A stretch of 64,000 nucleotides of DNA from Styela clava (taxonomy: Eukaryota): assembly GCF_964204865.1 (NCBI RefSeq), contig NC_135250.1, forward strand, positions 27,838,001 to 27,902,000, read 5' to 3'. Under the pieces are notes generated by a model. That model searched no databases. It was not told the DNA's origin and saw nothing but the letters and a program-made list of their open reading frames with translations. The stretch's first letter is position 1; every line of letters starts with the position of its first letter. A program made the position numbers and the translations under genes. This document shows, one piece after another, positions 943-64,000 of this stretch.

Positions 943-3900
943 CTACATGTTATAAAGCACGTTGTCTACCATTTTTCTTTCCAACTCAGCTTTTTTTGAA
1001 GTTTTTGCGTTTTTGTTGACCACGCTATACATATCTTCAATGTTTTTGGAGTTGTTTGTTCCATGTGTTTCCTCGTTCTCTTGATGCACCTCGTTCTCTT
1101 GCTGCGTTTCGTCCTCTTGCTGAGGTTCGTGTTGCGGACAAATTTTCGAGCTTGTAGATACTAACTTGCGATAATATGCCAGTTTACGGAGAAATCTTAA
1201 ACACAGAAGCTAAAGATAACGACCAGAGAAAAAAATCCGAATGAGTAGTAGCCTACTGGAGATTTGACAGTCGGTTGCATGAAAATATAGGCAGAATCTT
1301 GTATAATAATCTATGCTGAAAAATTGGCATGAACTAAATCAAACTTCCTACAATTTATAAAAAATAATTTTTTTTTCAAGTGTTCACTAATATTTTATAA
1401 ATTTATATTCAAATTACCTCAATGTTAGGATGATTATAAGGAGTATTGCTAAACCAAGCAAGATTCCCAGAACGATTATCAAAGTTAGAATATTCTTCGT
1501 TTTACAATTTCCACCATAACCTTTGGTTGTTTCTAGAACTTCTGCGGTCGTAGACAGTGATATTGAGGTTAAGCCATTTTGTGTATCATTCCCCAAGTTA
1601 TCAGATTCTGTTGCAGTCGGTCCATTCTCTGAATATTTTGTGTGGTAGATTGCGTTAGATGTGGTGGAAACAGTATTCCTTGTTGTAGTTTGTTTAATCC
1701 CTACAAATAAATACAATTTTGTTTTATTGGTGATTTAATTTGTTGCATTACTTCAATCAAGTTTGTTGAGGCTACTCAAATAGGTACAGTTCAACTTTTA
1801 TTACTGATTTATTTTATTTAATAAAGTTTGCTTTTTTGAAACAAAAATATCAGTAATAGAAAATTTAAGATGTCAGATCTGACGGAGTCTTTTGTGCTTC
1901 TTGCGTATTGGAATAAAACCCAAATATTTTCAGTTTTTATTGGTGTGAACTCTTTTTAAAACAAGTATGTGCATATATCAAGAAATCGCCTCTCAATTAA
2001 AAATTATTATAATAAATTATGGTATCAAATAATTAAAAATTAATTCGTATTCAATAAACTAAAATTACATTCCCTAATGCATAGGTTCTCAAAGTGCTCC
2101 GTACGGAGCCCCAGGGCACCGCGAGAGAAACCCAGGGGCTCCGCGAGCTATTCGATTACTTTTCAAAATAATAACTAGTTTTGTAACTGTTCAAAGAAGC
2201 AATAACAGCTTTGATAAAATTTGACAACAATATAGCATCGAAATATGGCAAAGAAGAGGAATTAAAAAATGACATTATTTATAAGCTGGAGCGCAGCCAG
2301 GATTCTCAAGAGGTGGGGATTTGAATCGGAAATTTCCGCGCAACATTCTTTGCGATTATAAAAAACGGATAACGAGATTTCTGTTGCGTAAAATGTATGG
2401 CCGATGCGAGCATTTAAAGGGTCTTGTCGTAATAATTCAATTGTACTCATAGTTACTCAAGTTTCATTCGAGATTTCTATTAGGATTACTAAAATGAAAG
2501 AATACTATTCTAAAATAACATAAAATACGTGATAAACTGCCAACTATAAATAAATTGGAGTCGTATTTTCGCGACCCTGGAATTTGTCAAACTTGATTTG
2601 TTCTTTTGCACTCGAGATTATTATTAAGCAAGATATCGCCGTTTAAAAAATCACAAGATCTGGGCCAAATACGATTGAAATTTATTTTAATGCATGCGGC
2701 TCCGTCGGTAGTTTCACAATAAAAAAAAGGTAATTCGCGCACACAATTAACTGTGTTCCGATTTCGCAGTTACTATACGGTGAATAACCAAAGAAAACCT
2801 AACATTACACCAAATTTTGTGATTTACAATGCCTATGAAAGCATTTTTAATCTGACGTGAGTCTTCTAAAACCAAACTTATATAGTGTGATCTTTTATTT
2901 TAAGTTTTAATATTTTAGAATGCATTTTTTCAATCAAGAAATTTGAGTTGCGGATTTACCTCTTTATTATTAATTATTATTTTTAGCATTTCGTCGCCGA
3001 TGACTATATATGGCAACATGTTTTTTACATTGAACTCATAGTTCCCCACGAGAACAAAAAAGCAATTATCGTCGCCATTGTGAAACAATACATGTATATG
3101 CCGAAGAAAATTTTTGATTTAGGGAGAATAAACACCGGCGTAAAGATGTTTAAAAACATGCCATGCTGACGAAAACTATCGGTGATTGTAACAAAATGCA
3201 ATCGCGCACGTTATCAGCGCCTTTTAAGTCTTCCGAAAATGTCAAAAGGGAAAAGATTCGACCCCTAGTTTATTAATATGTTTGTCAAGTGTCAAATTTA
3301 CAGCTTTAGTAAGAGTATATATAATTTAAATTTTGATTTATTTATGACTTGCATTAACCCATTAAAAAAGGTTTAGCATTTAATTTAGGTCAAGTACTTT
3401 TAACTTGCTCAGGAATATTTATCGGAAAGCTACAATTTTAACATTTCTTTTGGGGCTCCGCGCATATTAGTCAACCTTTTCAGGGGCTCCGCGACACCGA
3501 AAGTTTGAGAACCCTTGCCCTAATGTATAAGAGATTATTGACTAGTTGAGTATGCCAATGTACTGTATATTTAAAATAATGTATATACTTTGCTATTCTA
3601 CAAAATCGGCACATTATAATATTGTTGCAGCTCAGCAAGCATACATATTACTTCTTTGGGTAATATATGTTTACACTTTTGTATCTATGATATTTTCTAC
3701 TTCAGATTACTGCAGAATATAGTACGAAGGATTTAAGTTTAAAGAGACTAATTAAAATGGCTCATACGTAATGTGTTGCTTTTACCTGTGTTGTTTAATA
3801 TCCGGTATATTGACATTATGTTGAATTCCTGTAATTCAGAAGAGTAACCATCTCCTGTCTTATATGTTAAATTAATTGAAAAAACATTATCTCCAATGAT

Positions 3901-5338
3901 ATGACGGTATATCCCATTACATCCGTCATTAATAGATTCATCAGATATAGTTTTGAGGGAAAAAAGGAAACAGTCGTTGAGTTTGGAATGACACAGTTCT
4001 GTATCCACTAATCCAGCTGAAAAATAGTGATTAGTTGCAGCCTTTGCATTTTATTACCTCCTATAATTCACCATATACGGCACTAATATGAGTATCACGT
4101 CCTAATTTCACATATTATATCCGATATAATGGTTACCTACGTAGATATCTCGGCAAAAACAGCACAACTGAGACATTTGTAAATCTTAATTAACGCAACA
4201 GGAAATCATAAAGACAACTATTAAACTACTAAAAACTAGATAATATGCAACGTATAACACATAAACATGTTTCGAGAGAAATAACCACATGGTGAAATGA
4301 AATTACTAGTACACAAATTAATCGAAACAAGCCTTGAAGGCAGATATAAAACTCTGTTTTTATAATAAATAGAAGTTGTTTAATTGTTACAAATAAACAC
4401 AAAAAATATATTCCTCTTGATTACCAGTAATTTTCAGAGATCCAATGCACTGACTGTTTTGATTGAGAATATTTTTAGTAATCTTAACTAACAAGACGCT
4501 GTTAGCAGATATGCAACTATCGGCTTTTAATTCCCAAATAGTGTGAATATCCCATGCTTTTCTGAAAAATACAATTTAAAAATGACTATTTAAACTTTAT
4601 TTTCATGTTCAAATACGGCTGGATGATCATAAAATTTCATCATTTTTAAAAGTTCATCAAAATAAAGTTTTTCTATAATTTTCATTATTCTGTTGATTAT
4701 TATTCATGTTAAATTTTTTTTATTGGATTGAATGCTTCATTTGTATCAATTTTTATCAAAATTGAATAGAATAATAGAGAAATGTTTACGTTACACTTGC
4801 TATTGATACAGGTGTAGAACATAAATCAACGTTAGTCTGACCCAGACTAATAGATCGGTGAAGTATTGCTGCAACTATCGGTGAACAAGAAAAAATATTA
4901 GTTGCGTTTAATATTTTTCTTTAGAACTGACAAGTCGTAAATCCGCTCTAAGGGTTTGAGTTTCAAATACGCGAAATATTATTAAAGATGACTACTTTAA
5001 GTATACATAAAGTTAATATGCAAGTGTACATGTCAACTATTTTTTCCCAGTACTAATTGGTTGAATCCTTAAAAAAATGAAGTTATAAAACGTTGAAGTC
5101 ACGAATTTCTAAAAGACTCAAAACCGGGATGGAATTCCAAAATTCATATCACTCACTCTAAAAAGTTTCGGAATTATTTAAATTTGAACGAAGTATTTTA
5201 ACTCCACAACTTCATTCCCTATACATAGTGAAGTAAACAACACCTATCCGCTTATATACATTATTGAGAGTCACTAGTAGAAATGATATGAACAAATTAC
5301 TCACATATAAGTAACAAAACCCGCGCAAAGAAATGCAT
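943..5338 (-). CDS. Gene A: class I type I membrane receptor-like protein, ~350 aa, apparently intact
   Basis: Exons (minus strand) 5338-5305, 4874-4790, 4561-4425, 4101-4072 (candidate micro-exon), 4016-3786, 1700-1418, 1195-943. All introns GT-AG with matching phases; total 1053 nt with no internal stop. Signal peptide MHFFARVLLLIFAAILHRSIS; TM ILTLIIVLGILLGLAILLIIILTL; tail ...AYYRKL...DMYSVVNK...MVDNVLYNM*. Confidence 0.85.
2080..3517. mobile_element. Non-autonomous hAT-type DNA transposon in an intron of gene A
   Basis: Imperfect TIRs CATAGGTTCTCAAA / TTTGAGAACCCTTG; perfect 8-bp TSD CCCTAATG at 2072-2079 and 3518-3525. The empty site is seen in paralog D (about 22798). Confidence 0.9.
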
Positions 5339-8451: not shown

Positions 8452-11400
8452 TCAATATTCAATATCATGATAGGGGTGAAAATTTGTCGGCTCGTATTCA
8501 GATGATCCATCAGGTTGTTGCAATGAATCGCTCGTCAAGTATTTAATCTGGTGTCTTGGATCGGGATGATAAGTCATTGCAGAATGCTCATGACAAATAG
8601 GCAATTCGTATTCAGAAGTTTCGGTAGAGCTGGTTGTCTTTGATCGTTTAATAGTGTTGTTTTCGTAGATTCCGTGTTCACATTCAAACTGAGCTTTTGA
8701 TATATTTTTCATACTTGGTTTCTCATTATTCCGGATAGCAGTTGTATTCCTGTTGTTTTTCATCCTAAAATAATGAAAAAAGTATAGATTTCCAAGCTTC
8801 GGTCGTATCTCAATGTCATGCAGGTATAAATATTTCGGCGCCTAACCGTTGTAGATACAACAGTGATGCGAACATTTCGACAATGCTAACAAAAGCGAGT
8901 TCGACAATTAATGAATTTAATGTTACTTGGAATGATTTTGACCTACTACTACCGATCCCTGATGTCGTACTAACGACTCAACCACTTTTGAATCAGTTAA
9001 AAATAATACCTCTCTAACACAGTTTATATTATTCAAAATAGAAAATCCATTCCAAATCCAAAACTGCTATTTGGATATGTGATACGAATACCCATATGGA
9101 CATCTGAAGATTCCGAGAGTTGTTCCGGCAGATTCCGATAGTTTCCGTATTTGAAAACAATAGAAAATAAAATGGACGCTAGCTCTTTTAAATCAATGCC
9201 CTTGTCTGTGCAATGTTTATTAAACATCCAATAGTGATTTGAATCTTACTTGATAGTGATGACAATAATGATGATCACTGCAATAACGAGAAGAATGCCA
9301 AGTACAATAGTAGAGATGAAAAAGATTTTCTTTGTTTCTCTGCCAAGGTCGTCGCTACTTGTAGTTGGTTTTGTTATTTTCTCAACTCCAGTTTGTTCAA
9401 CCGACGCAGTTGTTGCTTCATTTGTGGGCAGGCGCGTGTTGCTTCCAGTAGTTGCAATTTGAACATCTTTATGAGCTTATTGAAAGTTTACATAATTCAA
9501 TACATCTAAATAATACCAATTATCATAACAAGCACAATTACAAGATTGACAGCATTGAAGTTTAAGAAATTAAAACCACACTAATTTTATTTTGTTCTAA
9601 TTTTTTTTTTTTAATATGTCGTCGATTTTGGTAAAGCCCAAAAATGTGTCAAGTTATTTTGTTTATAGGATATAAAAGCAATACCTATGTCGTGCTAACG
9701 AATAACCGCTCATAAGGACATAAGTATTCAGTTCGTTCTAAATTACAATAAATTCCTTGTTCCATTAGCGTATTTGTTTGCCCTTGTTTGCTGCATGTTT
9801 TCACATAGATTAAGGGAATGCGAAAATCTTGGAAATGATCATAGAAACCATCCTCTGTCTTATAGGTAATATTTATTCTAAATGCAAAGTCTTCAATGAT
9901 GATATGAGGAAATATTCTAGCACATCCGTCAGTAACAGAACCATTAGATACATTTTTGAAGAAAAAGGAAACAGTCGTTTGATTGGGAATTACGAAGTTC
10001 TGTTCTAATTTGATAAAAAATTTGCTATTTGCTATGCGGAGCATTTCATATAAATAGATTAATAAACATTGAATACAATACGAAGAACTTAAGTTGAAAA
10101 GACTAATTATATTCGCTCATACTTTGCTGCTTTCACCTGTGTTGTTTATGATCCGGTACATCAAATGGATTTTGTATTCTTGAATTTCATGAGAGTAACC
10201 ATTTCCTGTCTTATATGTCAAACTAATTGGAAAAATATTATCTTCAATGATATGCTGGTATATCCCATTACATCCGTCAGTAATAGATTTATCAGATACA
10301 GTTTTTGGGGCAAAAAGAAAACAGTCGCTGAGTTTGGAAGCACATAATTCTGTATCAACCAATCCAGCTGAAAAATAGTGATGAATTGGCGCCCTTACAT
10401 TATAGTACATGATAATACCTCCTATAATTTACCATATACGTCACTAATATGAGTACCAGGTCCTACTGTCACATATTATATCCGATATATTGGTTACCTA
10501 CTTAGAGATCTCGGCAAAAAAACGCATATCCCTAGTAACTGCGTTTTTTTTAAGTAAAGTGATACATTCTATTACTCTTTATATGGTGAATGGTGGTTAC
10601 ATTATCGCATGTAATTTTGAGGTAAATTATTTATTTTTGCGAAGCATAACTGACACCAACACATCTGTAATTCCTAATTACCGCAACAGCAGACAACTAT
10701 TCATAGGGATAACTATTATAAACTAGATAAGTAGTGCATTTATGCAACGTATAACACATAAACATGTTTTGAGAGAAATACCCCCTTGATGAAATAAAAT
10801 TACCAGGGCACAAATTAATTGAAACAAGCCTTAAAGGCGGATACAAAACTATATTTTTATAACAAATAAAAGTTGTTTAATTGTTACGGATAAACAAAAA
10901 AAAAATGTATTCACTTTGATTACCAGTAATTTTTAGAGATCCAATGCACTGACTGTTTTGATTGAGATTATTTTCAATAATTTTAACTAACATGACGCTG
11001 TTAACAGATATGCAACTATCGGCTTCTAATTCCCAAATATTGTGAATATCCCCTGCTCTTCTGAAAAATACAATTTAAACTTAATTTTCATGTTCATATA
11101 CGGCTGGATGATCATGAAATTTCATTTCATCATTTTTAAAAAGTTTATTAAAATAAATTTTTTTTATATTTTACATCATTCTGTTGATTGTTATTGAAGT
11201 TAAAAATTTTTTATTGAATTGGATGCTTTATTTGTATCAATTTTTATTATAATTTAACCAAAAAAAATTAAGAAATGTTTACTTTACGTTTGCTCCCACT
11301 TCAGGTGTTGTACATAAATCATAGTTAATCTGGTTCTGACCAATAGATTGGTGAAGTATTGCTGCCAATATAGATGAACAAAAAAGAATATTAGTTTTGT

Positions 11401-11835
11401 TGAATATTTTCCGCAGAACCGACAAGTCATAAATCCGTTCTAAAGGTTTGAGTTTCAAATACGCAACATTTTATTCAAGATGACTTCGTTAGGTATACGT
11501 ACAGTTATATGGCAGTGCAAATGTTTACTATCTCACTCAGTACTAATTAGTTATATCCGTGTCAAAGAAAAAATAAATTTATAAAACGCTGAAGTCACGA
11601 ATTTCTAAAAGACTCAAACTCTCGACGGAATCCTATAATTCATATCACTCATTTTAAAAAGATTGGGAAATATTCAAATTTGAATGAGGCATTTTAACTC
11701 AAAAAATTCTTTCCCTGTAAGTATTGAAGTGAACAACATCTATCCGTTTATATACATTACTGAGAGTCACTTATAAAAAATGATATGAACAAATTACTCA
11801 CATATAAGTAACAATACCCGCGCAAAGAAATGCAT
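8452..11835 (-). CDS. Gene B: class II membrane receptor-like protein, open if the duplicated exon is skipped and a cryptic acceptor is used
   Basis: Exons 11835-11802; 11367/11361-11283 (canonical acceptor AG>AT at 11368, in-frame CAG 6 nt downstream); 11060-10924; 10462-10433; 10367-10137; [10031-9783 duplicated exon, donor GT>GG]; 9475-9250 (stalk plus TM IFFISTIVLGILLVIAVIIIIVITI); 8764-8452 (tail with IYENN, EYELP, EYEPT, PYHDI). Confidence 0.65.
9783..10031 (-). pseudogene. Degenerate tandem duplicate of the 231-nt ectodomain exon (exon A')
   Basis: Translation homologous to exon A (TDGC..I..HI...INITYKTEDGFY). Internal indels sum to -3 and the donor is lost. Homologs at 34504-35614, about 52591-52835 and about 58593-58838. 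Confidence 0.75.
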
Positions 11836-11897: not shown

Positions 11898-14695
11898 CCA
11901 AGGTATAAAGTTTAAAAATGTAAAAATTTGTCAGGCCAACAGTTGTTATGCATGCATTCATCAGAGTATTTATGTATCTACTCTTTTATTACTTGTACTG
12001 AAGCGATGAATATTACTTGCCAAATGTAGATACGTAATTGTAAAGTACGCTCTTTGTTAATTGGTAATGTGTGATATCATTTCCTTGTGCACAAACGCTT
12101 ACCTGCAACAGTTTACTAAGGTTGTTTATTTGTAATCATGATCTGACTAATGTAATTCAATGATTGAGATTGAATCTTCCGAACAAAATTTTGAATTGGA
12201 AATATTGCTAATTTAGTTCGTGAACACTTTGGATATTTTTAATTTACTTAGATTACTCTTCACCCATTATGTATTTTGAAAGTGAATTGGCCAAATTATG
12301 AACAATGCTATGAAACAAGAGAGCGATGGTCAAATATATGAACACGAAATGATACGGGCATGCAATTTTTCACAATTTGGCACCGTATTGCAGCTGAGCA
12401 CAAATTTTAACTTACGCAAAGGCGAAACCACCACAAGGAGTGCAATTTTTAATTTTGTGATGACGTCATCGCACACAATACACGAATCTCTTAGAGGCCA
12501 CACATATTTTTGAGAAAGAGCAATGTCCAAATATGTGGACGCAAAGGTCGGGCATTGGTACTGGTACGGAAAGTCTAAAGCCTATAATAAAAAGGCCTTT
12601 AATTAAATTATTTATTGGCAATGAAGGATCAAATGACTAAACAAGAGAGCAATGCTGAAATATAGGGACACGAACGTCAAAACCCACACCCACAATTTCT
12701 CAAAACTATATTTTGAACGCTGGAACTAGAGACGGCTGTCATAAATACTTCTAGGTGTAGTTTAGTGGGTGGGCGTGTTGTAATAATTTTTGCATTTGCC
12801 ATTCCTGAGACCCACCTGATTGCGTCATCACAGCGATACGTCACAACTACGTCATATCATGTAATGAACCTTGCCAAAGCCAGATACCTTCCAAATACCT
12901 ACCTAAACTATTGCCTCACAAAAAAGCAAACAACGACATGGTGGAGTATAGTCACTGATTACAAATAAGAATTCACTTTGCTTCTATAGTCTTTTATCTT
13001 TATTCACGATTATTCCGCTTTTAAAATATGATTACACGAGAACTCGCGCATAAAATGTTTAATAATGAGGACAGGCATTCTTATAAAATTACAATCAAAT
13101 CAAAATCTAAAATAAACCCTTACACTCTCTATATCTCTGATACATTCATACCTAAAATATTACATGTTATCTTTCACTTTTGTTCATTGGCATTTCACGA
13201 AGGTATATTACGTAGTGATTTATTATCAAAGCTTACTAGAATTTACAAGTGAACGTAAATGTTATCAATTTATGGTAATTTACTTCAGACTAATCGTTCA
13301 GAACAAAACAAAGTTTTATATATTTTTTAAATAAGTATGTTTTAATTTCTCAAAATCTTTATATGTCTTCAGATCAAATTAAACTAAAAAGTTAGAAAAG
13401 AAATAATTTGAATGAATAAAGTGAAATGACGTACAGTTGGGACGAGAATGTGTATATGTATAACATGCAAATTGTCTCTGATGTATGGCTTACAAGAGAA
13501 TAGTAAAGCATGATAGCATGCTTGTATATTTATCAGTCTGTAATGTATTTTTTTTCAATTCGTCCAGAGTAGAGGTCAAATCAAGTTTTTCCAACCAGTA
13601 AAAGACAAAAATCATGCTAAAAATATATATATATAAAAAAATGATATTTAATCACTTGGGGATTAAAGGCGCGGGGAACCCAAACTGATTATCGAGCAGC
13701 TAAACCCAAAAATAAAATCAAAAGTAAACGATGCTCGCACTTGCGCTATGTCACAATTGATCATTGACCTTGGAAAGATATATTGATGCAAAACAACTAA
13801 ATGTTATACAGTTATGTAAATATTCAATGTCTTAATAATGGTTTAAATTTGTCGGTTCATATTCAGATGATCCATCAGGTTGTTGCAATGAATTGCTCAT
13901 CAATTATCCCACTTGACGCATTGGATCGGGATGTGTAGTCGTCTCAGAATGATCGTCTGAAATAGGTATTTCGTATCCAGAGGTCGCAGCTTGTATATTT
14001 GGTTGTATTTGTTTATTGACGATATTGTTCTCATAAATGTTTCGATCATTTTGAAACTGAGCTCTTGGAAAACTTGCGTTATGCACATTTGTTTTTTCAG
14101 GGTTGTCGGAAGTTGAAGCAGTTTTGTGCAGGCTCGTCCGACTCGTGGCCCGCGGGCCACATGTGGCCAATCGAAGGTTTCCGAGTGGCCCACGCGGTTC
14201 AATTCGAATCACAATGCCTCTCACAAATCTGGGCCATTATTGAAACCTCTAATAAAAAGATTATTCCTGGTCATTCAATCGCTCGAGAAGTACCACCCAG
14301 CTATCGAAATATTTTATTTAGGTCCCTTTGTGAGCGTTATTGGTGGAGAGAGATGCCTTGTATTTTAATCTGTTTTTCCTTTTTTTTTCCTGTGAAGCTA
14401 GAAGAGGCAATTTTTATGATCCTGATATTTGACAGTAGTTATTTGTACGAGCAAGTTTTTGCGCATGAACCATGTCAAATCCCCCGCGGGATCACTAATT
14501 TTTGATAGTGAAATGAAAAATTCGGTATGCATGGCTGCATCGTCCATCGCACCGAATATTGACAAACTTACTGGACAAAAGCGGTGTCATACTTGACATT
14601 AAAATATCTATTTGTGGTAAAAACTTTTGACGTAACTGTATCTTTGTATTTCCATTGTTTTTATAATTTTGGTGTGATGGTTTTGTTTGTTTTTT

Positions 14696-18936: not shown

Positions 18937-18971
18937 AAGTAAATAATGCATTAACACACGTATAAAACCAG

Positions 18972-32812: not shown

Positions 32813-32822
32813 CATCCGCGTT

Positions 32823-33024
32823 CACCGGAACGTAGTATGTTGATCAGGTTAGGGTTAGGCCATAATTTCAGATACAAATACTACGGGTGTCACTTGGCTA
32901 GTCTCAGAACTCATAATAACACTAAAATAGGGAAAATTGGAATAAAATTATGACTTAACCCTAACCTGGTACACATACTATGTTCAGGTGTCCGCCATAT
33001 TGTTGCACATACTACAGGAGACCA
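32823..33024. mobile_element. Left-truncated copy of the 8012 MITE
   Basis: Begins at CACCGGAACGTAGTATG at the deletion junction; right TIR is intact. Confidence 0.8.
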
Positions 33025-36200: not shown

Positions 36201-37417
36201 AAATTATTTATTTTCGCGAAATTTAAAATACATAACTGAGACATCTCATTTGTGATTCCTAATTATCGCAACAGGAGATCATAATACAACTATTAAACTA
36301 ATAAAAATCAGATAAGTAGAGAATTTATGGTACGTATAACACATAAACATGTTTCGACAGAACTAAACACATGATGAAATGAAATTACTAGGACACAAAT
36401 TAATCGAAACAATCCTTGAAAGCGGATACAAAATTATATTTTATAATAAATAGAAGTTGTTTGATTGTTACAAACGAACACGAAAAATGAATTCACTTTA
36501 ATTACCAGTAATTTTCAGAGATCCGATGCATTGACTGTTTTGATTGAGATTATTTTTGGTAATTTTAACTAACAAGACGCTGTTAACAGATGTGCAACTA
36601 TCGGTTTTTAATTCCCAAATATTGTGAATATCCCCTGTTCTTCTGAAAAATACAATTCGAAAATGAATATTTAAACTATATTTTCATGCTCACATACGGC
36701 TGGATAATCATGAAATTTCATTTCATCATTTTTAAAACTTTATCAAAATAAAATTTTCCTATATTTTACATCATTCTGTTGAATATTATTCATGATAAAA
36801 TGATCTTTTATTTAATTTGATGCTTTATTTGTATTAATTTTTATCAGAATTTAATCAAATAAATAGAGAAATGTTTACTTTACACTTGCGCTTGATACAG
36901 GTGTAGAACATAAATCAATGTTAATCTGGTTCTGACCAATAGATTGTTGAAGTATTGCTGCCACTATAGATGAACAAGAAAGAATATTAGTTATGTTGAA
37001 TATTTTTCCTCAGAACCGACCAGTAATAAATCCGCTTAATGGGTTTGAGTTTAAAATACGCGTCATACTATTAAAGATGACTCCGTCAAGTATGCGAGCA
37101 GTTATATGCAAGTGCAGATGTCAATTATCTCACTTAGTACTAATTAGTTATATACTTGTTAAAAAAGTCAAGTTATAAAACGTTGAAGTTCGATTTTCTC
37201 AAAACCTCGATGGATTTCTAGAATTCATATCATTCACTCTAAAAAGTTTTGGATTTATTCAAATTTGAATGAAGCACTTCTCCACAAATTCATTCACTGT
37301 ACGTAGTGAAGTAAATAAAACATATCCACTTATATACATTATTGAGAGTCACTAATGAAAAATGATTCGAACTAATTACTCACCTATAAATAACAATACC
37401 CGCGCGAAGAGATGCAT
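33228..37417 (-). CDS. Gene F: class II receptor with tyrosine-free truncated tail (or recent pseudogene)
   Basis: Exons 37417-37384, 36963-36879, 36642-36506, 36051-36022, 35955-35725 (donor GT>AT, new in-frame GT 6 nt further), [A' disrupted by a transposon], 34186-33961, 33540-33228. TAC>TAG at 33441-33443 turns IYENN into I*. Confidence 0.55.
34553..35423. mobile_element. 871-bp TIR DNA transposon with 4-bp TSD inserted in exon A' of gene F
   Basis: ~48-bp TIR CGTCA(C/G)GCTAATAACCAAATTG.GTAAGTCATTTTTAGC; TSD ATAG at 34549-34552 and 35424-35427. Contains a hAT-like terminus (CCTGGCTACGCCACTG) ending at 34889. Confidence 0.85.
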
Positions 37418-44835: not shown

Positions 44836-45364
44836 ATATATATTAGAAGCACGTTTTGTGTTGTCCGAAGTAATAATCAAATCTGAGTGTTTCGGGATAA
44901 AATAAATGCAAATACGTATTGTGAAGCACGTTGTCTAGCATTTCTTTTTCCGACTCAGCGTTTTTTTAAATTTTTGCGTTTTTGTTGACGACGCTATACA
45001 TAGCTTCAAGATTTTCGTGGTACGTAAAAAGAAAGCCTAGATATATGTACGAAAGAATTCAAAGAAAGGAAAAACAATTGGATTAAAAAAAACAACAGAT
45101 ATATATTAGAAGCACGTTTTGTGTTGTCCGAAGTAATAATCAAATCTGAGTGTTTCGGGATAAAATGAATGCAAATACGTATTGTGAAGCACGTTGTCTA
45201 GCATTTCTTTTTCCGACTCAGCGTTTTTTTAAATTTTTGCGTTTTTGTTGACGACGCTATACATAGCTTCAAGATTTTCGTGGTACGTAAAAAGAAAGCC
45301 TAGATATATGTACGAAAGAATTCAAAGAAAGGAAAAACAATTGGATGAAAAAAAACAACAGATC
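44836..45364. repeat. 263-bp tandem duplication containing a class I tail-end remnant
   Basis: GGTACGTAAAAAGAAAG anchor recurs 263 bp apart (45021 and 45284). Minus strand reads ENLEAMYSVVNKNAKI*KNAESEKEMLDNVLH. Confidence 0.85.
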
Positions 45365-45501: not shown

Positions 45502-48500
45502 CTACATATTATAAAGCACGTTGTCTACCATTTCTTTTTCTGACTTGGTGTTTTTGGAATTTTTCGCGTTTTTGTTGACGACGCTATACATATTTTCAAT
45601 GTTTTTAGAGTTGTTTGATTCTTGGGTCTCGTCGTCCTCTTGCTGCATTTCGCTCGGTTGCTGCACTTCGTTTTTTTGCTGCACTTCGTTCCCTTGTTGC
45701 ACTTCGCTATCCAGCTGCGCTTCCATCTCTTGCTGCGGTTCAGATTCCGGAGATAATTTCGAGGTTGTAGACAATAATTGACGATAGTTTGCCATTTTGC
45801 GATAAAATCTGCAACATAAATGGCAGAGATAACGAAGAGCTTAAAGACGCACGAACGAGTGGTACTACTATTTATACTAACGTTGATATCAATATTTTGC
45901 TTCAAAGTGGTTCAAAAGTCGTGTATACTTCACACACTTGAAATTTATCTTGTATGATTGGTATGAACTGAGCTATACTTCCTACAATTTATAAATGGTT
46001 ATTTAACAAGTTATTACAATTTTTCAAACGAATTTAGCGCCATTTGTAAAAAATTGAGGCTGGACCATACATAATTGAAAACAAAAAATCGAAGGATGGC
46101 GCTATAATTTTTTATGCAAATTACCTCAATGTTAGGATGATTATGATGAGTACTCCTAAACAAAGCAAGACTGCCAGAACAATAATCAAAGTTGGATTAT
46201 CTTTTGTTTTACAATTTTCACCATCTCCTGCATCCGTAGACAGTAGGATTAAGGTTATGTCATTTTGTGTATTGTTTATCGAATAACCAGGTTGAGTTGC
46301 AATCCGCCCATTTTCTGAATATGTTGTATGATAGTTAGATGTGGTGGGAACACTATTCCTTGCTGTAGTTTGTTGATGTTCTACAAATAAGTACAGTCCA
46401 GTTTTTATTGCTGGTAACTCTTTTTAAATTCAAGTATGTGCATATATCAAAAATCGCGTCACAATTAAAGATTTTTATAAGAAATTATGGTATCAAATAT
46501 TTGAAAATTCTCTTTTAAAAAGCGCGTTTGTTTCGTTTTCAATTAACTAAAATTACATTCTCTAATGTTAAACAGATCATTGACTAGATGAGTATGGCAA
46601 TGTACTGTATATTTAAAAAATGTATATACTTTACTATTCTACAGAATTGGCACATTATAATATTGTTGAAGCTCAGCAAGCATACATATTACTTTTTTTA
46701 GTAATATATGCTTACACTTTTTGCAGTTATATTATTTTCTACTTCAGATTACTGCAGAATACAATACGAAGAACTTAAGTTGAAAGAGACTAATTTAATT
46801 CGCTCATACTTAACTTGTTGCTTTTACCTGTGTTGTTTAATATCCGGTATATTAACAGGATTTTGAATTCTTGAAGTTCATGAGAGTAACCATTCCCTGT
46901 CTTATATGTCAAAATAATTGAAAAAATATTGTCTCCAATAATATGATGGTGCATCCCCCCACATCCGTCAGTAATAGCTTCCTCAGATACAGTTTTTGAG
47001 GCGAAAATAAAACAGTCGTTGAGTTTGGAATCACACAGTTCTGTATCCACTAATCCATCTGAAACATAGTGATTAGTTGGTGCCTTTACATGATAATACC
47101 TCCTATAATTTACCATATACGGTACTAATATGAGTATCGGGTCCTGATTTTACATATTAAATCCGATATATTGGTTACCTATACGTACAAATCTCGACTG
47201 AAAAACAGCATATCCCAAATATTTTTCGTTTTAAAAAAATATATAATGTGAAACATTTTATTACAGTTTATATGGTGAATGGCGGGAACATTATCGCTTG
47301 TAATTTTAAGGATAAATTGTTTATTGTTGTGAAGTTGGGAATACATATCTGATCACAACACAACTGTAATTCCCAATTAACGCAACAGAAGATGATAAAT
47401 ACAACTATTTAAAACTAGATGAGTAGTGCATTTATGTAACGTATATAACACATAAACATGTTTCGAGAGAAATAACCACATGATGAAATAAAATTACTGG
47501 GACACAGGTTAATCGAAACAAGCCTTGAAGACGATACAAAACTATATTTTTATAATAAATAAAAGTTGTTTGATTGTTACAAATAAACACGAAAAATGTT
47601 TTCATATTGATTACCAGTAATTTTCAGAGATCCAATGCACTGACTGTTTTGAGTGAGATTATTTTTTGTAATTTTAACTAACAAGACGCTGTTAACAGAT
47701 ATGCAACTATCGGCTTTTAATTCCCAAATACTTTGAGTATACCCTTTTCTTCTGAAAAATACAATTTAAAAAAGGACTATTTAAACTATATTTTCATGTT
47801 CATATACGGCTGGATGATCATGAAATTTCATTTCATAATTTTTAATAGTTTACCAAAATAAAATGTTTCCATATTTTTCATCATTCTGTTAATTATTATT
47901 CATGTTAAAATGATTTTTTATTGGAGAGGATGCTTTAATTGTATCATTTTTTATCAGAATTTAATAAAATAAAAATAGACAAATGTTTACTTTACAGTTG
48001 CTCCTGATATAGGGGTAGAACATAAATCAACATTAATCTGGTCCTGACCAATAGATTGGTGAAGTATTGCTGCCACTATGGGTGAACAAGAAAGAATATT
48101 AGTTTTGAATATTTTTCCTCAGAACCGACAAGTCATAAATCCGCTCTGGGGGTTTGAGTTTCAAATACACGTCATATTATTGAAGATGACTTCTTTAAGT
48201 ATACGAACAGTTATATGCAGTGCAAATGTCAACTATCTCACTTAGTACTAATTAGTTATATATTTGGTAAAAAAGTCAAGTTATAAAACGTTGAAGTTCC
48301 GATTTTCTCAAAACCTCGATGAAATTCTCGAATTCATATCACTCACTCTAAAAAGTTTCGGAATTATTCAAATTTGAATGAGGCAATTTAACTCAAAAAA
48401 TTCATTGAATGTAAGTAGTGAAGTAAACATCACCTATCCACTTACATTATTGAGAGTCACTAATAAAAAATGTTATGATCAAATTACTCACCTATAAGTA

Positions 48501-48525
48501 ACAATACCCGCGCAAAGAAATGCAT
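45502..48525 (-). CDS. Gene G: class I receptor, ~359 aa, apparently intact
   Basis: Exons 48525-48492, 48075-47991, 47751-47615, 47143-47114, 47058-46828, 46380-46125, 45808-45502; 1080 nt open. TM LIIVLAVLLCLGVLIIIILTL; tail NYRQL...NMYSVVNK...MVDNVLYNM*. Confidence 0.85.
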
Positions 48526-51313: not shown

Positions 51314-54300
51314 TCAATATTTAATATCATGATACGGAAGGAAGTTTGTCGGTTCGTATTCAGATGATCTATCAGGTTGTTGCAATGAATCGCTCGTCAA
51401 GTATTTAATCTGATGCCTTGAATCGGGATGAGAAGTCATTGCAGAATGCTCGTGACAGATAGGCAATTCGTAACCAGAAGTTTCGGTAGAGCTGGTTGTC
51501 TTTGATTGTTTAATAGTGTTGTTTTCGTAGATTCAGTGTTCACATTCAAACTGAGCTTTTGTTATATTTTTGATATTCGGTTTCATATTCTTCGGGCTTG
51601 TAGTTGTATTCCTGTTGTTTTTCATCCTAAAATTAAAAAAAAAATGTATGGATTTTCAAGCTTCGGTAGCATCTCAATTTCTTGCAGGTCTAACTATTTT
51701 GGCGCCTGAGTCTTGGAGATACAACAGTGATGCAAACATTTTACAAATGCAAACGGAGTCAACCAAGAAAATAAAGGAATTTGATGGCTTTTGATACCTG
51801 GAATGATTTTGACCTATTGCTGCCGATATCTGTCGTCGTATTAACGTTTCAACCACTTTTGAATCCACCAAAGATAATTACTCTTCAACTTAGTTGATAT
51901 TGATCTAAATAGAAAATCAATTTAAAAAAAAATTCAATTCCGATATGTAATACCAATAATCATATGAACATAAGAAAGCGGACAGAGACCGAGAGATTTA
52001 CGTGTCTGTCAAAAGTTTATTTAACATCCATTAGTGATTTGAACCTTACCTAATAGCGAGGACAATAATGATGATCACTGCAATAACGAGAATAATGCAA
52101 AGTACAAGAGTAGAGATGAAAAAGAATTTCTCAGTTTCTCTGCCAAAGTCGTCGCTACTTGTAGCTGGTTTTGTTATTTTCTCAACTACAGTTTGTTCAA
52201 TCGGCGAAGTTGTTGCTTCATTTGTGAGAAAGTACCTGTTGTCTTCAGTAGTTGCATTTTTATCATCTTTAGAAGCTTAAAAATTTATATAATTCACAAT
52301 ATTTATATAATAACAATCATTACAAAATTCACAATTTCGATATTGCTAGCATTAAAGTTTGGAAAAAAAATATCATACTAATTTTAATTTTTATTTTGTT
52401 TTGATTAATTTTTTTTTCTTAAAATATGTCTGATGTTAGTTAAGCCAAAAAATGTGTCGAGTCATTTTGTTTATAATATATAAAAGCAATAACTACGTCA
52501 TGCTAACGAATGACCACTCATGAGGCCATAACTATTCAGTTCGATCTAAATCACAACAAATTCCATGTTTATCTTTAGCTTATTTTTTACCTTGCTGCTT
52601 GTTTTCGCTTAAACAGGGGAAATGCGAAAAACTTGGAAATGATCATAGAAACCATACTCTGTCCTTTAAGTAATATTTATTGTAAATATATTGCCTTCAA
52701 TGATATGAGGAATTATCTTAGCACATCTATCGGTAATAGACTCATTAATCACATATTTGGAGTAAAAAGGAAACAGTAGTTTGGTTGGGAATCACAAAAT
52801 TCTCTGCTGATAGAATAAATCAAATTTCCCATTTGCTATATGAAGCATTTTATACAAATAGATTGATAAACATTGAATACAATACGAAGTACTTAGGTTT
52901 AAGGAGACTTATAAATTCGCTTATACCTAATTTGTTGCTTTTACCTTTGTTGTTTAATATCCGGTAATCCGGTATATTGACTGGAAGTTGAATTGTTGAA
53001 ATTCAGAAGAGTAACCATCTCCTGTTCTATATGACAAATTAATTGGAAAAATATTAACTCCAATGATATGCTGGTATATCCTATTATACCGTCAGTAATA
53101 GATTCTTCAGATACAGTTTTTGAGGTAAAAAGGAAACAGTCGTTGAGTTTGGAATCACACAGTTCTTTATCCACTAATCCAGCTGTGACATATTGATCAA
53201 TTGATGCCTTTATATGATAATACATGATAATACCTCGTATAATTTACCATATATGGCACTAATGTGATTATCGGGTCCTAATTTTACACATTATAACCGA
53301 TATATTGATTACCTACGTAGAGAACAGCATATCTCAAGTATCTTTCATTTTTATAAACAAATGAAGTGAAACATTATATGACTGCTTATATGGTGAATGG
53401 CGGGAACAATATTGCTTGTAATTTTGAAGGAAATAAAGTATTTTTGCGAAATTTGAAATACGTAACTGAGACTAACACATTTGTAATTCCCAATTACCTC
53501 AAAATAAGATGATAAAGACAACTATTAAAAACTAGATAAGGAGTGAAATTATGCAACGTTTAACACATGAACATGTTTCGAGGAAAATAACCACGCAATA
53601 AATTGAAATTACAAGGATACAAATTAATCGAAACAAGCCTTGAAGACGGATACAAAACTATATTTGTATAATAAATAAAAGTTGTTTATTTGTTACAAAT
53701 AAACACAAAAAATGTATTCACTTTAATAACCAGTAATTTCAGAGATCCAATGCACTGACTGTTTTGATTGAGATCATTTTTAGTAATTTTGACTAACGTG
53801 ACGCCGTCAACAGATGTGCAACTATCGGCTTTTAATTCCCAAATACTGTGAATATCCCCTCTTCTTCTGAAAAATACAATTTGAAAATGACTATTTGAAC
53901 TATATTTTCATGTTCATATATGGCTGGATAATCATGCAATTTCATTTCTTCATTTTTAAAAATTTATCAAAATAAATTAAGCCCATATTTTACATCATTC
54001 TGTTGATTATTATTTATGTTAAAATTATTTTTTATTGGATTGGATGCTTTATTTGTATCAATTTTTATCAAAACTTAATAAAAAAATAGAGAAATATTTT
54101 ACCTTATCATTGAGCCTGATTCATGTGTAGAACATAAATCAACGTTAATAGTACTCAGACCAATAGATTGGTGAAGAATTGCTGCCACTATAGGAGAACA
54201 AGAAGGAATATTAGTTGCGTTGAATATTTTTTCTCAGACCAACAAGTCATAAATCCGATCTTAGGGTTTGAGTTTAAAATACGGGGTTTAAGCTTTTTTT

Positions 54301-54588
54301 AAAGAAAGTATACGTACAGTTATATACAGTGCAAATGTCAACTATCTCACTTGGTGCTAATTAATTATATATCAAAAGTCAATATTGATAAATTCATATC
54401 ACTCACTCTAAAAAATTCGGGATTTATTCAAATTTGAATGAGGCATTTTAACTCAACAAATTTAATCACTGTACGTATTGAAGTAAACAACATTTATCCT
54501 GTTATATACATCATTGAGAGTCACTATTAAAAATAATATGAGCAAATTACTCACCTATAAGTAACAATACCCGCGTATAGAAATGCAT
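51314..54588 (-). pseudogene. Gene H: class II pseudogene
   Basis: -1 nt in exon 3. Exon A (53182-52945) is 238 nt (-1 plus an 8-nt duplication TACCGGAT). A' has a frameshift and a stop. TM exon 52275-52050 is open. Tail has GGA>TGA at 51533-51535. Confidence 0.85.
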
Positions 54589-57316: not shown

Positions 57317-60300
57317 TCAATATTCGATATCATGATACGGGTGGAAATTTGTCGGCTCGTATTCAGATGATTTATCAGGTTGTTGCAATGAATCGCTCGT
57401 CAAGTATTTAATCTGAAGCCCTGGATCGGGATGAGAAGTCATTGTAGAATGCTCGTGACAAATAGGCAATTCGTATCCAGAAGTTTCGGTAGAGCTGGTT
57501 GTCTTTGATTGTTTAATAGTGTTGTTTTCGTAGATTCCGTGTTCACATTCAAACTGAGCTTTTGTTATATTTTTGATACTCGGTTTCATATTCTTCGGGG
57601 TAGTAGTTGTATTCCTGTTGTTTTTCATCCTAAAATTTAAAAAAATGTATGGATTTTCAAGCTTCGGTATTATCTCAATTTCTTGCAGGTCTAACTATTT
57701 TGGCGCCTGAACCTTGGAGATACAACAGTGATGCAAACATTTTAAAAATGCAAACGGAAGCAACCAAGACAATTAAGGAATTTGATGTTATTTGATACTT
57801 GGAATGATTTTGACCTACTGCTATCGATCCCTGCTGTCGTACTAACGACCCAACCACTTTTGAATCCGCCAAAGATAATTACTCTCCAACATAGTTGATA
57901 TTGATCTAAATAGTAAATCCAGTTTTTAAAAAATTCAATGCCGATATGTAATACCAATAATCATATGAACATAAGAAAGCAGGCAGAGTCCGAGAGTTGT
58001 ACGTGTCTGTGCAAAGTTTATTTTACATCCAATAGTGATTTGAACCTTACCTGATAGCAAGGACAATAATGATGATCACTGCAATAACGAGAAGAATGCC
58101 AAGTACAAGAGTAGAGATGAAAAAGAATTTCTCAGTTTCTCTGCCAAAGTCGTCGCTACTTGTAGCTGGTTTTGTTATTTTCCCAACTACAGTTTGTTCA
58201 ATCGGCGAAGTTGTTGCTTCATTTGTGAGAAAGTACCTGTTGTCTTCAGTAGTTGCATTTTTATCATCTTTGGGAGCTTAAAAATTTATAAAATTCACTA
58301 TATTTAAATAATAACAATCATTACAACATTCACAATTCTAACATTGTTAGCATTAAAGTTGGGGAAATAAAATCCATACTAATTTTAATTTTAATTTTGT
58401 TTTAATCAATTTTTTTTCTTAAAATATGTCGGATATTAGTAAAGCCTAAAAATACATCAAGTTATTTTGTTTATATTATATAAAAACAATAACTAAGTCA
58501 TGCTATCGAATGACCATCCATGAGGCCATAAATATTCAGTTCGATCTAAATCCCAATAAATTCCATGTTTATCATTGGCGTATTTTTTTTACTTTGTTGC
58601 TTGTTTTCGCGTAAACAGAGGAAATGCGAAAAACTTGGGAATGATCATAGAAACCATCCTCTGTCTTATAAGTATTATTTATTGTAAATATATTGCCTTC
58701 AATGATATGAGGAAATAACCTAGCACATCTATCGGTAATACATTTTTTAATCACATTTTTTGGAGTAAAAGAGAAACAGTCGTTCGGTTGGGAATCACAA
58801 AATTCTGAGCTGATAGAATAAAACAAACATGCTGTTTGCTATGCAAAGCATTTTATACAAATAGATTGATAAACATTGAATACAATAAGAAGAACTAAGG
58901 TTGAAAGAGACTTATTAAATTCCCTTATATTACTTATATTGTTGCTTTTACCTGTGTTTAATATCCTGTATATTGACTGGATGTTTAATTCTTGTAATTC
59001 AGAAGAGTAACCATCTCCTGTCTTGTATGTTAAATTAATTGGAAAAATATTATCTCCAGTGATGTGACTTTGTATTCCATTACATCCGTCAGTAATCGAT
59101 TCATCAGGTACAGTTTTTGTGGCGAAAAGGAAACAGTCGTTGAGTTTGGAATCACACATTTCTGTATCCACTAATCCAGCTAAAACATAGTGATAAGTTG
59201 GTGCCATTACATGATAAAACCTCCTAAAATTTACCAAATACGGTACTAATGTGAGTATCGGGTCCTAATTTCACATATTATATCCGATATATTAGTTACC
59301 TACGTGGAGATCAAGACAAGAAACAGCATATCCCAAGTAACTTTCGTTTGATAAACAAATGAAGTGATACATTCTATCACTGTTTATATGGTGAATGGCG
59401 GGAACAATATTGCTTGTAATTTTCAGGGAAATTATTTATTTTTGCTAAATTTGAAATACATAACTGGGACTAACCCATTTGTAATTCCACATTATCGCGA
59501 CAGGAGATCATAAAGACAACTATTAAACTAATAAAAATCAGATAAGTAGAGAATTTATGCTACGTATAACACATAAACATGTTTCGACAGAACTAACCAC
59601 ATCATGAAATGAAATTACTAGGACACAAATTAATCGAAACAAGCCTTGAAAGCGGATACAAAACTATATTTTTAAAATAAATAGAAGTTGTTTAATTTTT
59701 ACAAATAAACACGAAAAATGTATTCACTTTAATTACCAGTAATTTTCAGAGATCCGATGCACTGACTGTTTTGATTGAGATTATTTTTAGTAATTTTAAC
59801 TAACAAGACGCTGTTAACAGATGTGCAACTATCTGTTTTTAATTCCCAAATAGTGTGAATATCCCCTGCTCTTCTGAAAAATACAATTTAAAAATGACTA
59901 TTTAAACTATATTTTCATGTTCATATACGGCTCGATGATCATGAAATTTCATTTCATCATTTTTAAAAAGTTTATCAAAATGAAAATTTTCTCATATTTT
60001 ACATCATTCTGTTGATTATTATTCATGTTGAAATTATTTTTCATTGTATTGGATGCTTTATTTGTATCAATTTTTTTTGAATTTAATCAAAGGATATAAA
60101 AATGTTTACCTTACACTTGCTCGAAGTTCGGGTTTGGAACATAAATCAACATTAAACTGACTCAGACCGATAACTTGGTGAAGTATTGCTGTCACTATCG
60201 GTGAACAAAAATGAAGATTAGTTACGTTGAAAAATTTTTCTCGGAACTGACGAGCCGTAAATTTGCTTTGAGGGGTTTGAGTTTCAAATACGCGATATAT

Positions 60301-60653
60301 TATTAAAGATGACTTCGTTAAGTATATGTATAATTAGATGCAGTGCAAAAGTCGACTATTTCACTTAGTACTAATTAGTTAGATCCTCGTTAAAAAAAAG
60401 TCAAGTTATAAAACGTTGAAGTCCCGAATTTCAAAAAGACTCAAACCCTCAATGAATTTCTATAATTCATATCACTTACTCTAAAAAGTTTTGGAATTAT
60501 ATAAATTTGAATGAACTCAATGAATTTATTCCTTGTACGTAGTGGAGTAAACAACACCTATCCACTGATATACAATATTGAGAATCCCTCATGAAAAACG
60601 ATATGAACAAATTACTCACCGATGAGTGACAATACCCGCGCGAAGAGATGCAT
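57317..60653 (-). CDS. Gene I: class II receptor, ~350 aa, intact if exon A' is skipped
   Basis: Exons 60653-60620, 60194-60110, 59873-59737, 59264-59235, 59179-58952 (228 nt, in-frame 3-nt deletion), 58276-58051, 57629-57317; 1053 nt open. Tail IYENN, GYELP, EYEPT, PYHDIEY*. Confidence 0.8.
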
Positions 60654-62464: not shown

Positions 62465-62989
62465 AACATAAATCAACATTAATCTGGTTCTGACCAATAG
62501 ATTGGTGAAGTATTGCCGCCACTATAGATGAACAAGAAAGCTATATTAGTTATGTTGAATATTTTTCCTCAGAACCGACAAGCCATAAATCCGCTCTAAG
62601 GGTTTGAGTTTCCAATACGCGTCATATTAATAAAGATGACTCCTTTAAGAATGCGAGCAGTTATATGTAAGTGCAGATGTTAACTATCTCACGTGGCACT
62701 AATTAGTTATATACTCGTTAAAAAAGTCAAGTTATAAAACGTTGAAGTTCCGATTTTTTCAAAACCTCGACGGATATTTAGAATTCATATCATTCACTCA
62801 AAAAAGTTTCGGAATTATTCAAATTTGAATGAGGCACTTAAACTCAACAAATTCATTCCCTATACGTAGTGAAGTAAATAAAACCTATCCACTTATATAC
62901 ATTATTGAGAGTCACTAATAGAAAAAGAAACTGATACGAACTAATTACTCACCTATTATAAGTAACAATACCCGCGCGAAAAGATGCAT
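62465..62989 (-). pseudogene. Fragment J: orphan exon 1 and partial exon 2 of a deleted receptor gene
   Basis: Exon 1 at 62989-62953 (MHLFARVLLLII). Exon 2 from 62521 breaks at about 62465 and joins spacer sequence homologous to 7100 and 56010. Confidence 0.85.
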
Positions 62990-63834
62990 GTTTTTCAAAT
63001 ATGTCAGTTCCCGACTCTTGCAACTACACCAAAGAACTTTAGATATATGATTATTCCAGGGTATAAATTTTGAAAACGTGAAACTTTGTCAAAGCGACAG
63101 TTGTTACGTTGCATTCATCAGAGTGTATCTATACTCATTTATTACGTGTACAAAAGAGATGAATCTTACTTGCCAAATGCAGATACGTAATTGTAAAGTA
63201 CGTTCTATGTTTATTAGTAATGTGCGAGATCACTTTCTCGTGTATAGACGATCACCTGCAACAGTTTCCTAAGGTTTGAAATTATGATCTGACTAATGTA
63301 CTTCAATGATTGAGATCGAATCTTTCAAACTAAATTTTTAATTATTAATATCCATCATAAGATCCCGAACACATTTTGTGGGCTTCTTAGTTTATTTAGA
63401 ATACTATCCACAAATTATGTATTGAAAATGAAAAGATTAAATGATTAAAAAAGAGAAAAATGCTGAAATATATGGAAACGAAGGCGAGAAAACGTAAAAC
63501 AAAATATTTTATCCACAATTTCCCTAAAACTACATTCCGAAACAAGCTGAAACTATGGAACGACTGCCGTAAATGGGTCTAGGTATAGTTTAGTACCACA
63601 AGTACCTCTGATGGGCGTGGCGTATTTTGCATATGCCATTCCTGAGACCCACCTAACTACGTCATCCCAAATTTACGTCAGTACTGCGCCACAATCACGC
63701 AATATACCTTGCCGAAGCCAGATATTTCTCCCGCATTGATGTAATTGTGACGTCGCAGTGACCTTTTTTTGTATAGCGTAGTGAGGTGGGGACAGGAATG
63801 AAATATGCAAAAAATACAACGCCACTATTGACTA

Positions 63835-64000
63835 TTCCAGGTTCTGAGAATTACTGAAAATTTGTCGGTTCGTATTCAGATGATCCATAAGGTTGTTTCA
63901 ATTGCTTATCAAGTATCCCACTTGATCTGGATGAGTAGTCGTCTCAGAATGAACGTCTGAAATAGGTATTTCGTATCCACAGGTCGCGGCTAGTATAGCT
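63835..64000 (-). pseudogene. C4: 3' end of another class III tail exon, running off the window
   Basis: AATCGYEIPISDVHSETTTHPD...SSEYEPTNF, homologous to C2 and C3. Confidence 0.75.

Follow-up and report, generated by a model that had tools for sequence, protein, structure and literature searches.

Tunicates are the closest living relatives of vertebrates, and the fester/FcoR receptors of Botryllus are, to our knowledge, their only well-studied polymorphic recognition receptors, with no homologues that we know of outside their own small group. Botryllus schlosseri and Styela clava belong to the same ascidian family, the Styelidae. In Botryllus, FF and FcoR proteins have ectodomains in which an N-terminal immunoglobulin (Ig)-like region is followed by Sushi, FF has three transmembrane (TM) helices, and the tails carry 'core' tyrosine motifs of the form YxxI/L/V, with immunoreceptor tyrosine-based inhibitory motifs (ITIMs) and hemi-immunoreceptor tyrosine-based activation motifs (hemITAMs) swapped between variants (PMC12582321). 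Here we describe a tandem gene cluster of comparable build in a 64,000-nucleotide stretch of the S. clava genome (C1 27,838,001-27,902,000; the window). We read it, with somewhat better than even confidence, as part of a young family of type I surface glycoproteins that cross the membrane once and evolve by birth and death, in which recombination has joined one ectodomain to two different 3' cassettes to give a paired system. Coordinates below are those of the window unless given in Mb or for another chromosome; negative values and values beyond 64 kb lie outside it.

The KIR, LILR, SIRP and CD300 clusters offer the most familiar comparison. Like them, the Styela cluster is tandem, copy-rich and loaded with pseudogenes, it places near-identical ectodomains on different TM and cytoplasmic modules, and recombination swaps its ectodomains. 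Unlike them, it has an ectodomain that is not Ig-like by any test run, lacks a canonical ITIM, and has no short-tailed member with a charged TM segment for an adaptor bearing an immunoreceptor tyrosine-based activation motif (ITAM); both Styela classes are long-tailed, with non-canonical tyrosine motifs. The likeness to FF/FcoR lies in large, clustered, lineage-restricted type I families, in intergenic recombination that mixes ectodomains and tails and, compared by description, perhaps in core-type YxxI/L/V motifs (YSVV, YRQL and YHDI in Styela). Domain content sets the two apart: the Styela family has one six-cysteine beta-sandwich with no Ig or Sushi signal, no canonical ITIM or hemITAM, and no match to FF or FcoR in sequence.

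Genes were located by tblastn with exon translations, by repeat search and by blastn with exon queries, and splice sites and phases were read from alignments that included flanking sequence. Exons were translated and searched singly, and whole-protein analyses were run on NCBI models of paralogues. The window holds seven minus-strand copies of a 5' module (genes A, B, D, F, G, H and I). There are also two fragments, E from a 3' end and another from a 5' end, and four relics of tails of a third type, IIb (Table 1). The 5' module consists of four coding exons, with lengths of 34, 85, 137 and 231 nt in frameshift-free copies, except that the fourth exon of I has 228 nt; in H, indels have changed the third and fourth exons to 136 and 238 nt. 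The phases of these exons are 0-1, 1-2, 2-1 and 1-1, and their AG/GT splice sites are canonical in most copies. In the proposed gene structure of six exons, a leader and three further exons would encode an all-beta ectodomain of ~140 aa with six cysteines, followed by one exon for the stalk and TM segment and one for the tail.

The original prediction had proposed at least eight minus-strand genes plus a fragment, sharing exons of 34, 85, 137, 30 and 231 nt. The minus-strand tandem family stands, as do four of the five exon lengths, which agree with splice sites and phases, but the count becomes seven genes and the two fragments, and the 30-nt exon has to be dropped. That exon has an AG acceptor only in G and D and is out of frame in both (the candidate in G would be a frame-breaking piece of 19 nt), and it is absent from the NCBI models of paralogues. 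Phase 1 at the end of exon 3 matches phase 1 at the start of the 231-nt exon, so the two join directly. The NCBI Gnomon models XP_077971537 and XP_077971580 use the same six exons; XP_077971580 makes this junction ('...QITAGLVDTE...'), and XP_077971537 makes it with a 9-nt extension from an alternative donor. Genes A, G and I had been described as complete type I proteins of ~350-360 aa; all three are indeed intact, the only fully intact genes in the window, although exon-by-exon phase arithmetic gives them 340, 349 and 340 aa. The same arithmetic leaves the six-exon model of D open.

The remaining copies, B, F, H and E, are damaged. In B, the six-exon frame is open, and the acceptor of exon 2 reads AT rather than AG, a loss that has probably disabled the gene. 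F has an AT donor at its 231-nt exon, an interrupted relic exon (described below) and a stop after 32 tail codons, while in H a 1-nt deletion in exon 3 and indels in the 231-nt exon leave two exons frameshifted, and the tail contains a TGA. Of E, as first reported, only part of the module is left: a partial 231-nt exon is followed by class I 3' exons in which the stalk exon has a deleted acceptor and a 2-nt deletion and the tail an early stop.

Two 3' modules follow this shared ectodomain, and both are as originally described. Class I is characterized by a stalk rich in Ser, Thr and Asn, whose one cysteine lies close to the membrane on its outer side; the TM segment leads into an acidic tail, rich in Gln, that carries YRKL or YRQL near the membrane, then MYSVVNK and a C-terminal DNVLYNM. 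Class II has a cysteine-free stalk and TM exon and a tail with IYENN, YELP, YLTS, YEPT and YHDIEY. Similarity between the two is undetectable by BLASTP (tails, E = 1.1; stalk/TM exons, E = 97), in line with the earlier view of them as non-homologous. Intact tails are 83-103 aa long and that of D 60 aa, and both TM segments are uncharged. Motif conservation clearly exceeds the background. MYSVVNK and DNVLYNM are intact in the distal class I proteins P0003, P0009 and P0010, which are about 45-50% identical overall; in 13 class II and IIb tails, the tyrosine of YExP and the whole YEPT motif are invariant. The stalk cysteine is common to all intact class I copies and the distal genes, which suggests that class I proteins may form disulfide-linked dimers through this unpaired, membrane-proximal residue.

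In D, a 1-nt insertion ends the tail after MYSVVNK and removes the terminal LYNM. D (at 21945-22128) and XP_077971537 (P0001; about -78000) both end in '...KTSKKR' through a common frameshift that costs them DNVLYNM, and D-like genes would constitute a natural short-tail subtype of class I. In the class II tail (57317-57629 in I, and also in B), Cys/His-rich patches, FECEH and PICHEH, flank YENN and YELP, whereas the IIb tail is without them; a metal-binding or clasp role for the patches is conceivable.

It could be argued that the two tails are alternative 3' ends, reached by alternative splicing across neighbouring copies, rather than parts of separate genes. The genes do run head to tail on one strand, and E, with its class I 3' exons, lies directly downstream of the class II gene F. 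Yet no gene of either class lacks a conserved upstream region, an ATG exon or a full set of ectodomain exons of its own, E is internally damaged, and the NCBI models are confined to single genes; we regard this explanation as very improbable.

How the two cassettes came to share an ectodomain is suggested by a dead exon. Homology between class I and class II genes runs about 135 nt past the 231-nt exon and ends where, in class II, a relic exon starts: each class II gene in the window has a second, older copy of the 231-nt-type exon between its live copy and the TM exon. These relics were considered as live exons and rejected: in I the natural donor leaves phase 0 where the TM exon has to be entered in phase 1, the copy in B carries a frameshift, that in H contains stops, and that in F is broken up. 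Phase would be kept only by truncated forms spliced from a weak internal GT. In a tree of all 231-nt-type exons, the live exons of both classes fall into one clade with the classes intermingled, and their identity is 73% between classes against 71-76% within classes. The relic exons group on their own (support 0.97), outside a clade that unites main and distal exons (support 1.0), and are nearest to the exon of the IIb gene, at 51% identity versus 43-44% to the live exon. The tails of class II and IIb are 42-49% identical. We propose that unequal recombination placed a class I-type 5' module in front of an older IIb-type gene, giving the class II chimeras; the IIb-type gene's own ectodomain exon would then have become redundant and decayed to a pseudo-exon, and the blocks of I, II and IIb would have been amplified by segmental duplication. 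In the tree of the whole 5' module the classes are only partly separated, one class I group lying within class II, so exchange continued. In one copy outside the window (about -52100 to -52410), the relic exon is open and the live exon is broken, which hints that the two were formerly a mutually exclusive exon pair.

The window covers about one third of a main cluster of ~190 kb. A profile of the 231-nt exon gives 51 matches in the genome, nearly all on C1 at 27.585-27.95 Mb, with four weak ones on C6. When 217 kb around the window were annotated with the same exon queries, the main cluster was found to contain 24 genes with a 5' module: nine of class I, 14 of class II (including an intact IIb-type gene at the upstream end of the cluster) and one without a recognisable 3' module. 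By the six-exon model, about 10-11 of the 24 are intact. Read in the direction of transcription, the cluster repeats an order in which a IIb relic is followed by one to three class II genes and then one class I gene. The most similar duplicated blocks, of 9.3 kb at 94.4% and 4.4 kb at 95.6% identity, lie 111-114 kb apart; an assembly duplication of the cluster is ruled out, as the blocks are at most 96% identical and represent real segmental duplications. A more divergent subcluster at 27.585-27.62 Mb has both tail types, and at the sensitivity used neither tail type was found elsewhere in the genome, which confines both to this region of C1.

More remote relatives of the ectodomain are located on C6, where about ten copies at 18.2-18.54 Mb hold most of the ectodomain in two closely spaced open frames. 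In these relatives, exons 2 and 3 are merged, all six cysteines are retained and identity is about 25-30%; used as queries, they return the C1 cluster at E values between 1e-7 and 1e-4, together with one place on C17 (11797205-11797441). At least one of the C6 relatives (18.25-18.50 Mb) is followed by a TM-containing open frame.

Selection was examined in 11 apparently intact genes by Nei-Gojobori counts with codon bootstraps, expressed as the ratio of nonsynonymous to synonymous divergence (dN/dS). Purifying selection, with dN/dS significantly below 1, is evident in the 231-nt exon (0.48; bootstrap 0.31-0.75), tail I (0.56; 0.40-0.80) and the class I stalk/TM exon (0.60; 0.40-0.91); the value for tail II is 0.53 (0.26-1.22). 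The mature N-terminal half of the ectodomain (mature exon 2 plus exon 3) has a dN/dS of 0.90 (0.58-1.43) overall and 1.79 (0.98-3.80) among class I genes, where 0.03 of the bootstrap replicates do not exceed 1; the 231-nt exon has a lower value than either. Diversification of this half in class I is thus suggestive, not conclusive. The distance of the intron between exon 3 and the 231-nt exon is 0.16, in the same range as dS.

These values bear on the possibility that the cluster is evolutionary debris, a recent and fast-decaying orphan family whose intact copies are open only through youth and have little or no function. Frameshifts, stops or lost splice sites in about half of the 24 copies would fit such an origin, as would a dN/dS near 1 in exon 2, exon 3 and the TM exon of class II, and the small number of copies with NCBI protein models. 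Three features are harder to reconcile with it. Firstly, the intact copies have dN/dS significantly below 1 in the 231-nt exon, the class I stalk and tail I. Secondly, the motifs and the six cysteines are kept across subfamilies of 25-50% identity, the chromosome 6 relatives included. Finally, a relative from another species (P0004, below) is a contiguous, transcript-like open reading frame. On balance, debris is quite unlikely to account for the family.

On the reading of the cluster as a paired receptor family, one ligand-binding domain would feed two different phosphotyrosine outputs. Class II may act as a multi-site SH2 docking scaffold: its tails have five or six conserved tyrosines, with glutamate at +1 in four, and offer YENN (YxN, Grb2-type), YELP or YEIP (YxxP, Crk/Nck-type, one YxxP per tail), YEPT and YHDI. 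Class I may be an internalising receptor, a damping receptor of Csk- or ITIM-like type, or both. The closest approach to an ITIM is DMYSVV or NMYSVV, with the wrong residue at -2, and YxxPhi motifs are found at YRKL/YRQL, about 8-10 residues from the membrane, and at YSVV, the tail ending in LYNM. In Cbp/PAG, YSSV is the Csk SH2 site (PMC3492796), and class I YSVV resembles it. This resemblance is limited to one short motif, since PAG, unlike the Styela proteins, is almost without an ectodomain and is palmitoylated, and no Pfam PAG match was found among the family members searched.

The same motifs allow a plainer explanation, namely that these are non-signalling surface proteins for adhesion, cargo uptake, tunic biology or gamete interaction, and not for recognition of an immune type, and that their tyrosine motifs are YxxPhi signals for endocytosis or lysosomal sorting. 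Class I YRQL/YRKL, near the membrane, is textbook-like in this respect, YSVV and YHDI fit as well, a regular-expression scan of the tails found no canonical immunoreceptor motif, and the CUB-like fold, should it hold, is widespread among surface proteins outside immunity. The class II tails are less easily explained in this way, as YxN and YxxP motifs among several conserved tyrosines, most of them followed by glutamate, are typical SH2 ligands; nor would sorting alone lead one to expect that old and young subclusters alike retain two unrelated cassettes next to each other. We consider a pure sorting role unlikely.

The ectodomain is certainly a cysteine-rich beta-sandwich, and a CUB-like fold is a plausible lead. 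Six invariant cysteines and the motif [FY]P.[TS]..Y.T run through the family-wide alignment. In the AlphaFold2 predictions, a leader helix precedes an all-beta domain of ~140 residues, after which come a disordered stalk and a TM helix. In an exhaustive structural comparison, a first model built from an eight-row alignment (mean predicted local distance difference test score, pLDDT, 50.8) matched mostly CUB domains at the top: Kremen (Z 9.1, root-mean-square deviation 2.7, 103 residues aligned), the spermadhesin 1spp (Z 8.4, 104 of 109 residues aligned), and MASP, C1s, neuropilin, cubilin and TSG-6 at Z about 8. A second model of a different member, from a 32-row alignment (mean pLDDT 67.8, predicted template modelling score 0.60), has its best match to an unrelated beta-sandwich at Z 6.5 and reaches Z 4.4-4.8 with CUB domains, so the better of the two models fails to reproduce the assignment. 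Foldseek returned no significant match for either model. Language-model features (ESM Atlas) place CUB clusters first, at 0.85, a score rated as a lead only. As read from the sequence, the spacings of cysteines 1-2 and 3-4 fit the pair of disulfides in CUB, and a third pair, made up of the last two cysteines, would close an additional loop. CUB (PF00431) gave zero matches even at E up to 10 with single exons and eight full-length members, which likewise gave no Ig or Sushi match in Pfam, and the profile search of PDB sequences was blank.

A CUB-like outer domain would bring the family close to known scaffold receptors. CDCP1 is one CUB-bearing scaffold receptor with a tyrosine-motif tail, and DCBLD1/2 are others of the kind. 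DCBLD receptors are single-pass proteins with an outer CUB domain. Once Fyn and Abl have phosphorylated their YxxP tails, these recruit the SH2 adaptor CRKL (PMC6029619). The Styela proteins differ in having no sequence homology to DCBLD, only a lead towards the CUB fold, one YxxP per tail and no LCCL or discoidin domain; DCBLD, unlike the Styela cluster, is not a tandem multigene family.

Database searches support a lineage-restricted, undescribed family that matches no curated one, in agreement with the original prediction, in which it had gone unrecognised. In Pfam, no exon and none of the eight full-length members rose above threshold, and the profile search against PDB sequences gave nothing meaningful. 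A HMMER search with the 231-nt-exon profile against 1.84 billion representatives returned five relatives and one spurious bacterial repeat protein. Four of the five are S. clava entries annotated 'uncharacterized protein' (LOC144425764, LOC120326404, LOC120326597 and LOC144425790); a word-indexed search additionally found LOC120326446, and such searches with P0001, the family alignment and P0004 found no further members. A literature search by locus names found no mention of these loci. Annotated proteins in the main cluster are XP_077971537 at -76275 (class I), XP_077971580 at 83450 (class II) and LOC120326597 at 112515.

The fifth relative, P0004, a protein of 211 aa on a 965-nt Logan contig, was the sole member that the searches returned from beyond S. 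clava. In the S. clava genome it matches exons of this cluster best, at no more than 42% identity, so that its source must be another species. As its open reading frame is contiguous while the cluster genes are interrupted by introns, the contig looks like a spliced transcript. It encodes a leader, an ectodomain, a TM segment and a cytoplasmic tail of four residues, and would represent a third, tail-less receptor format.

Several observations weigh against the paired receptor reading and have to be set beside the evidence for it. Across all tail types, the regular-expression scan found no ITIM ([SIVL]xYxx[IVL]), immunoreceptor tyrosine-based switch motif, ITAM or hemITAM, nor did any tail type contain YxNM or NPxY. 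The TM segments have no charged residue, and the SH2 partners named for individual motifs are assigned by resemblance only. The N-terminal dN/dS of ~0.9 fits relaxed constraint as well as diversification, and roughly half of the main-cluster copies carry the damage noted above. Of the 24 main-cluster genes, just three have an NCBI model in the protein databases that were searched; the genes of the window have none and are predicted from genomic sequence. One distal gene also joins a main-type exon to a class II tail, which leaves the order of recombination unsettled and makes more than one exchange likely.

The original prediction of a paired receptor family thus holds in its genomic aspects, that is, the shared ectodomain seen in the exon identities and trees, the non-homologous tails and the unstable tandem cluster, and not in its signalling hallmarks. 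Because the ITIM and the charged-TM/ITAM-adaptor features are absent, the family should not be filed among paired receptors; and with no canonical motif, no charged TM residue and two long tails, opposite signalling is only a hypothesis. That the family works like paired receptors, the whole forming a paired recognition system, is likewise a hypothesis, and an immune or self/non-self role a guess. A bolder proposal is that this cluster and the related clusters may constitute a system for self/non-self or pathogen recognition in a solitary styelid, of an origin independent of KIR-like and fester/FcoR systems, with a non-Ig ectodomain whose N-terminal half is diversifying and with a dimeric, internalising or Csk-like class I (YSVV) opposing a class II scaffold (YxN/YxxP) behind the same binding domain; we hold this to be a doubtful extension.

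If the paired reading is true, it would be further evidence for the repeated evolution of paired-receptor design. The family would be the second large receptor family in the Styelidae, with a different ectodomain and the same design of swappable tyrosine tails, recombination and birth and death. The dead exon would mark the recombination that moved one ectodomain to a second signalling cassette, which would make the locus a readable record of how a pair is made. For experiments, the window offers three intact genes, two tail types and a natural tail-truncated variant.

Table 1. Family members and fragments in the window; on the minus strand, the higher coordinate of a gene lies at or near its 5' end.
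Feature	Position	Strand	Description
Gene A	943..5338	-	Class I, intact, 340 aa; from exon alignment, splice sites and phases
Gene A exons	5305-5338, 4790-4874, 4425-4561, 3786-4016, 1418-1700, 943-1195	-	Fifth exon, Cys stalk and TM; sixth exon, tail
Gene B	8452..11835	-	Class II, six-exon frame open, 341 aa; TM exon 9250-9475, tail 8452-8764
Relic exon 'ecto2' of B	9685..10044	-	Inside intron; frameshifted, donor lost
IIb tail relic	13820..14224	-	IYENN-like, YEIP; 82% identical to tail of LOC120326597 (P0007); matching ectodomain absent upstream
Gene D	21945..24725	-	Class I, open frame of 312 aa, shortened tail
IIb tail relic	25600-25907
Fragment E	31347..32826	-	3' part of class I gene, partial 231-nt exon
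Gene F	33228..37417	-	Class II pseudogene
Relic exon of F	about 35418-35627		Counterpart of 'ecto2'
IIb tail relic	38283-38583
Gene G	45502..48525	-	Class I, intact, 349 aa
Gene G exons	48492-48525, 47991-48075, 47615-47751, 46828-47058, 46125-46380, 45502-45808	-
Gene H	51314..54588	-	Class II pseudogene
Relic exon of H	about 52591-52848		Counterpart of 'ecto2'
Gene I	57317..60653	-	Class II, intact, 340 aa
Gene I exons	60620-60653, 60110-60194, 59737-59873, 58952-59179, 58051-58276, 57317-57629	-	Fourth exon, 228 nt; fifth exon, TM; sixth exon, tail
Relic exon of I	about 58593-58809		Counterpart of 'ecto2'
5' fragment	62465..63004	-	Exon 1 and part of exon 2 only
IIb tail relic	63854-63999

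Several further elements lie between these genes. Rfam gave no RNA family matches in the window. Just downstream of the stop codon of G, a 263-nt tandem duplication at 44836-45363 (two copies, 99% identical) holds relics of the last ~32 codons of a class I tail (tblastn 44918-45013 and 45181-45276). On the plus strand at 14746-15156, beside a IIb tail relic, an open reading frame of 136 aa matches the GIY-YIG nuclease domain (Pfam E = 1.3e-5) and is probably what is left of a transposable element; a Penelope-like type would be our guess. Minus-strand open frames at 20597-21154, 29771-30395 and 43019-43695 encode a reiterated '...HMSVENALS...' peptide over an 85-nt tandem repeat (repeat at 20690-20934). 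They recur upstream of the class I copies D, E and G and downstream of IIb relics, and are probably non-coding, satellite-like sequence.

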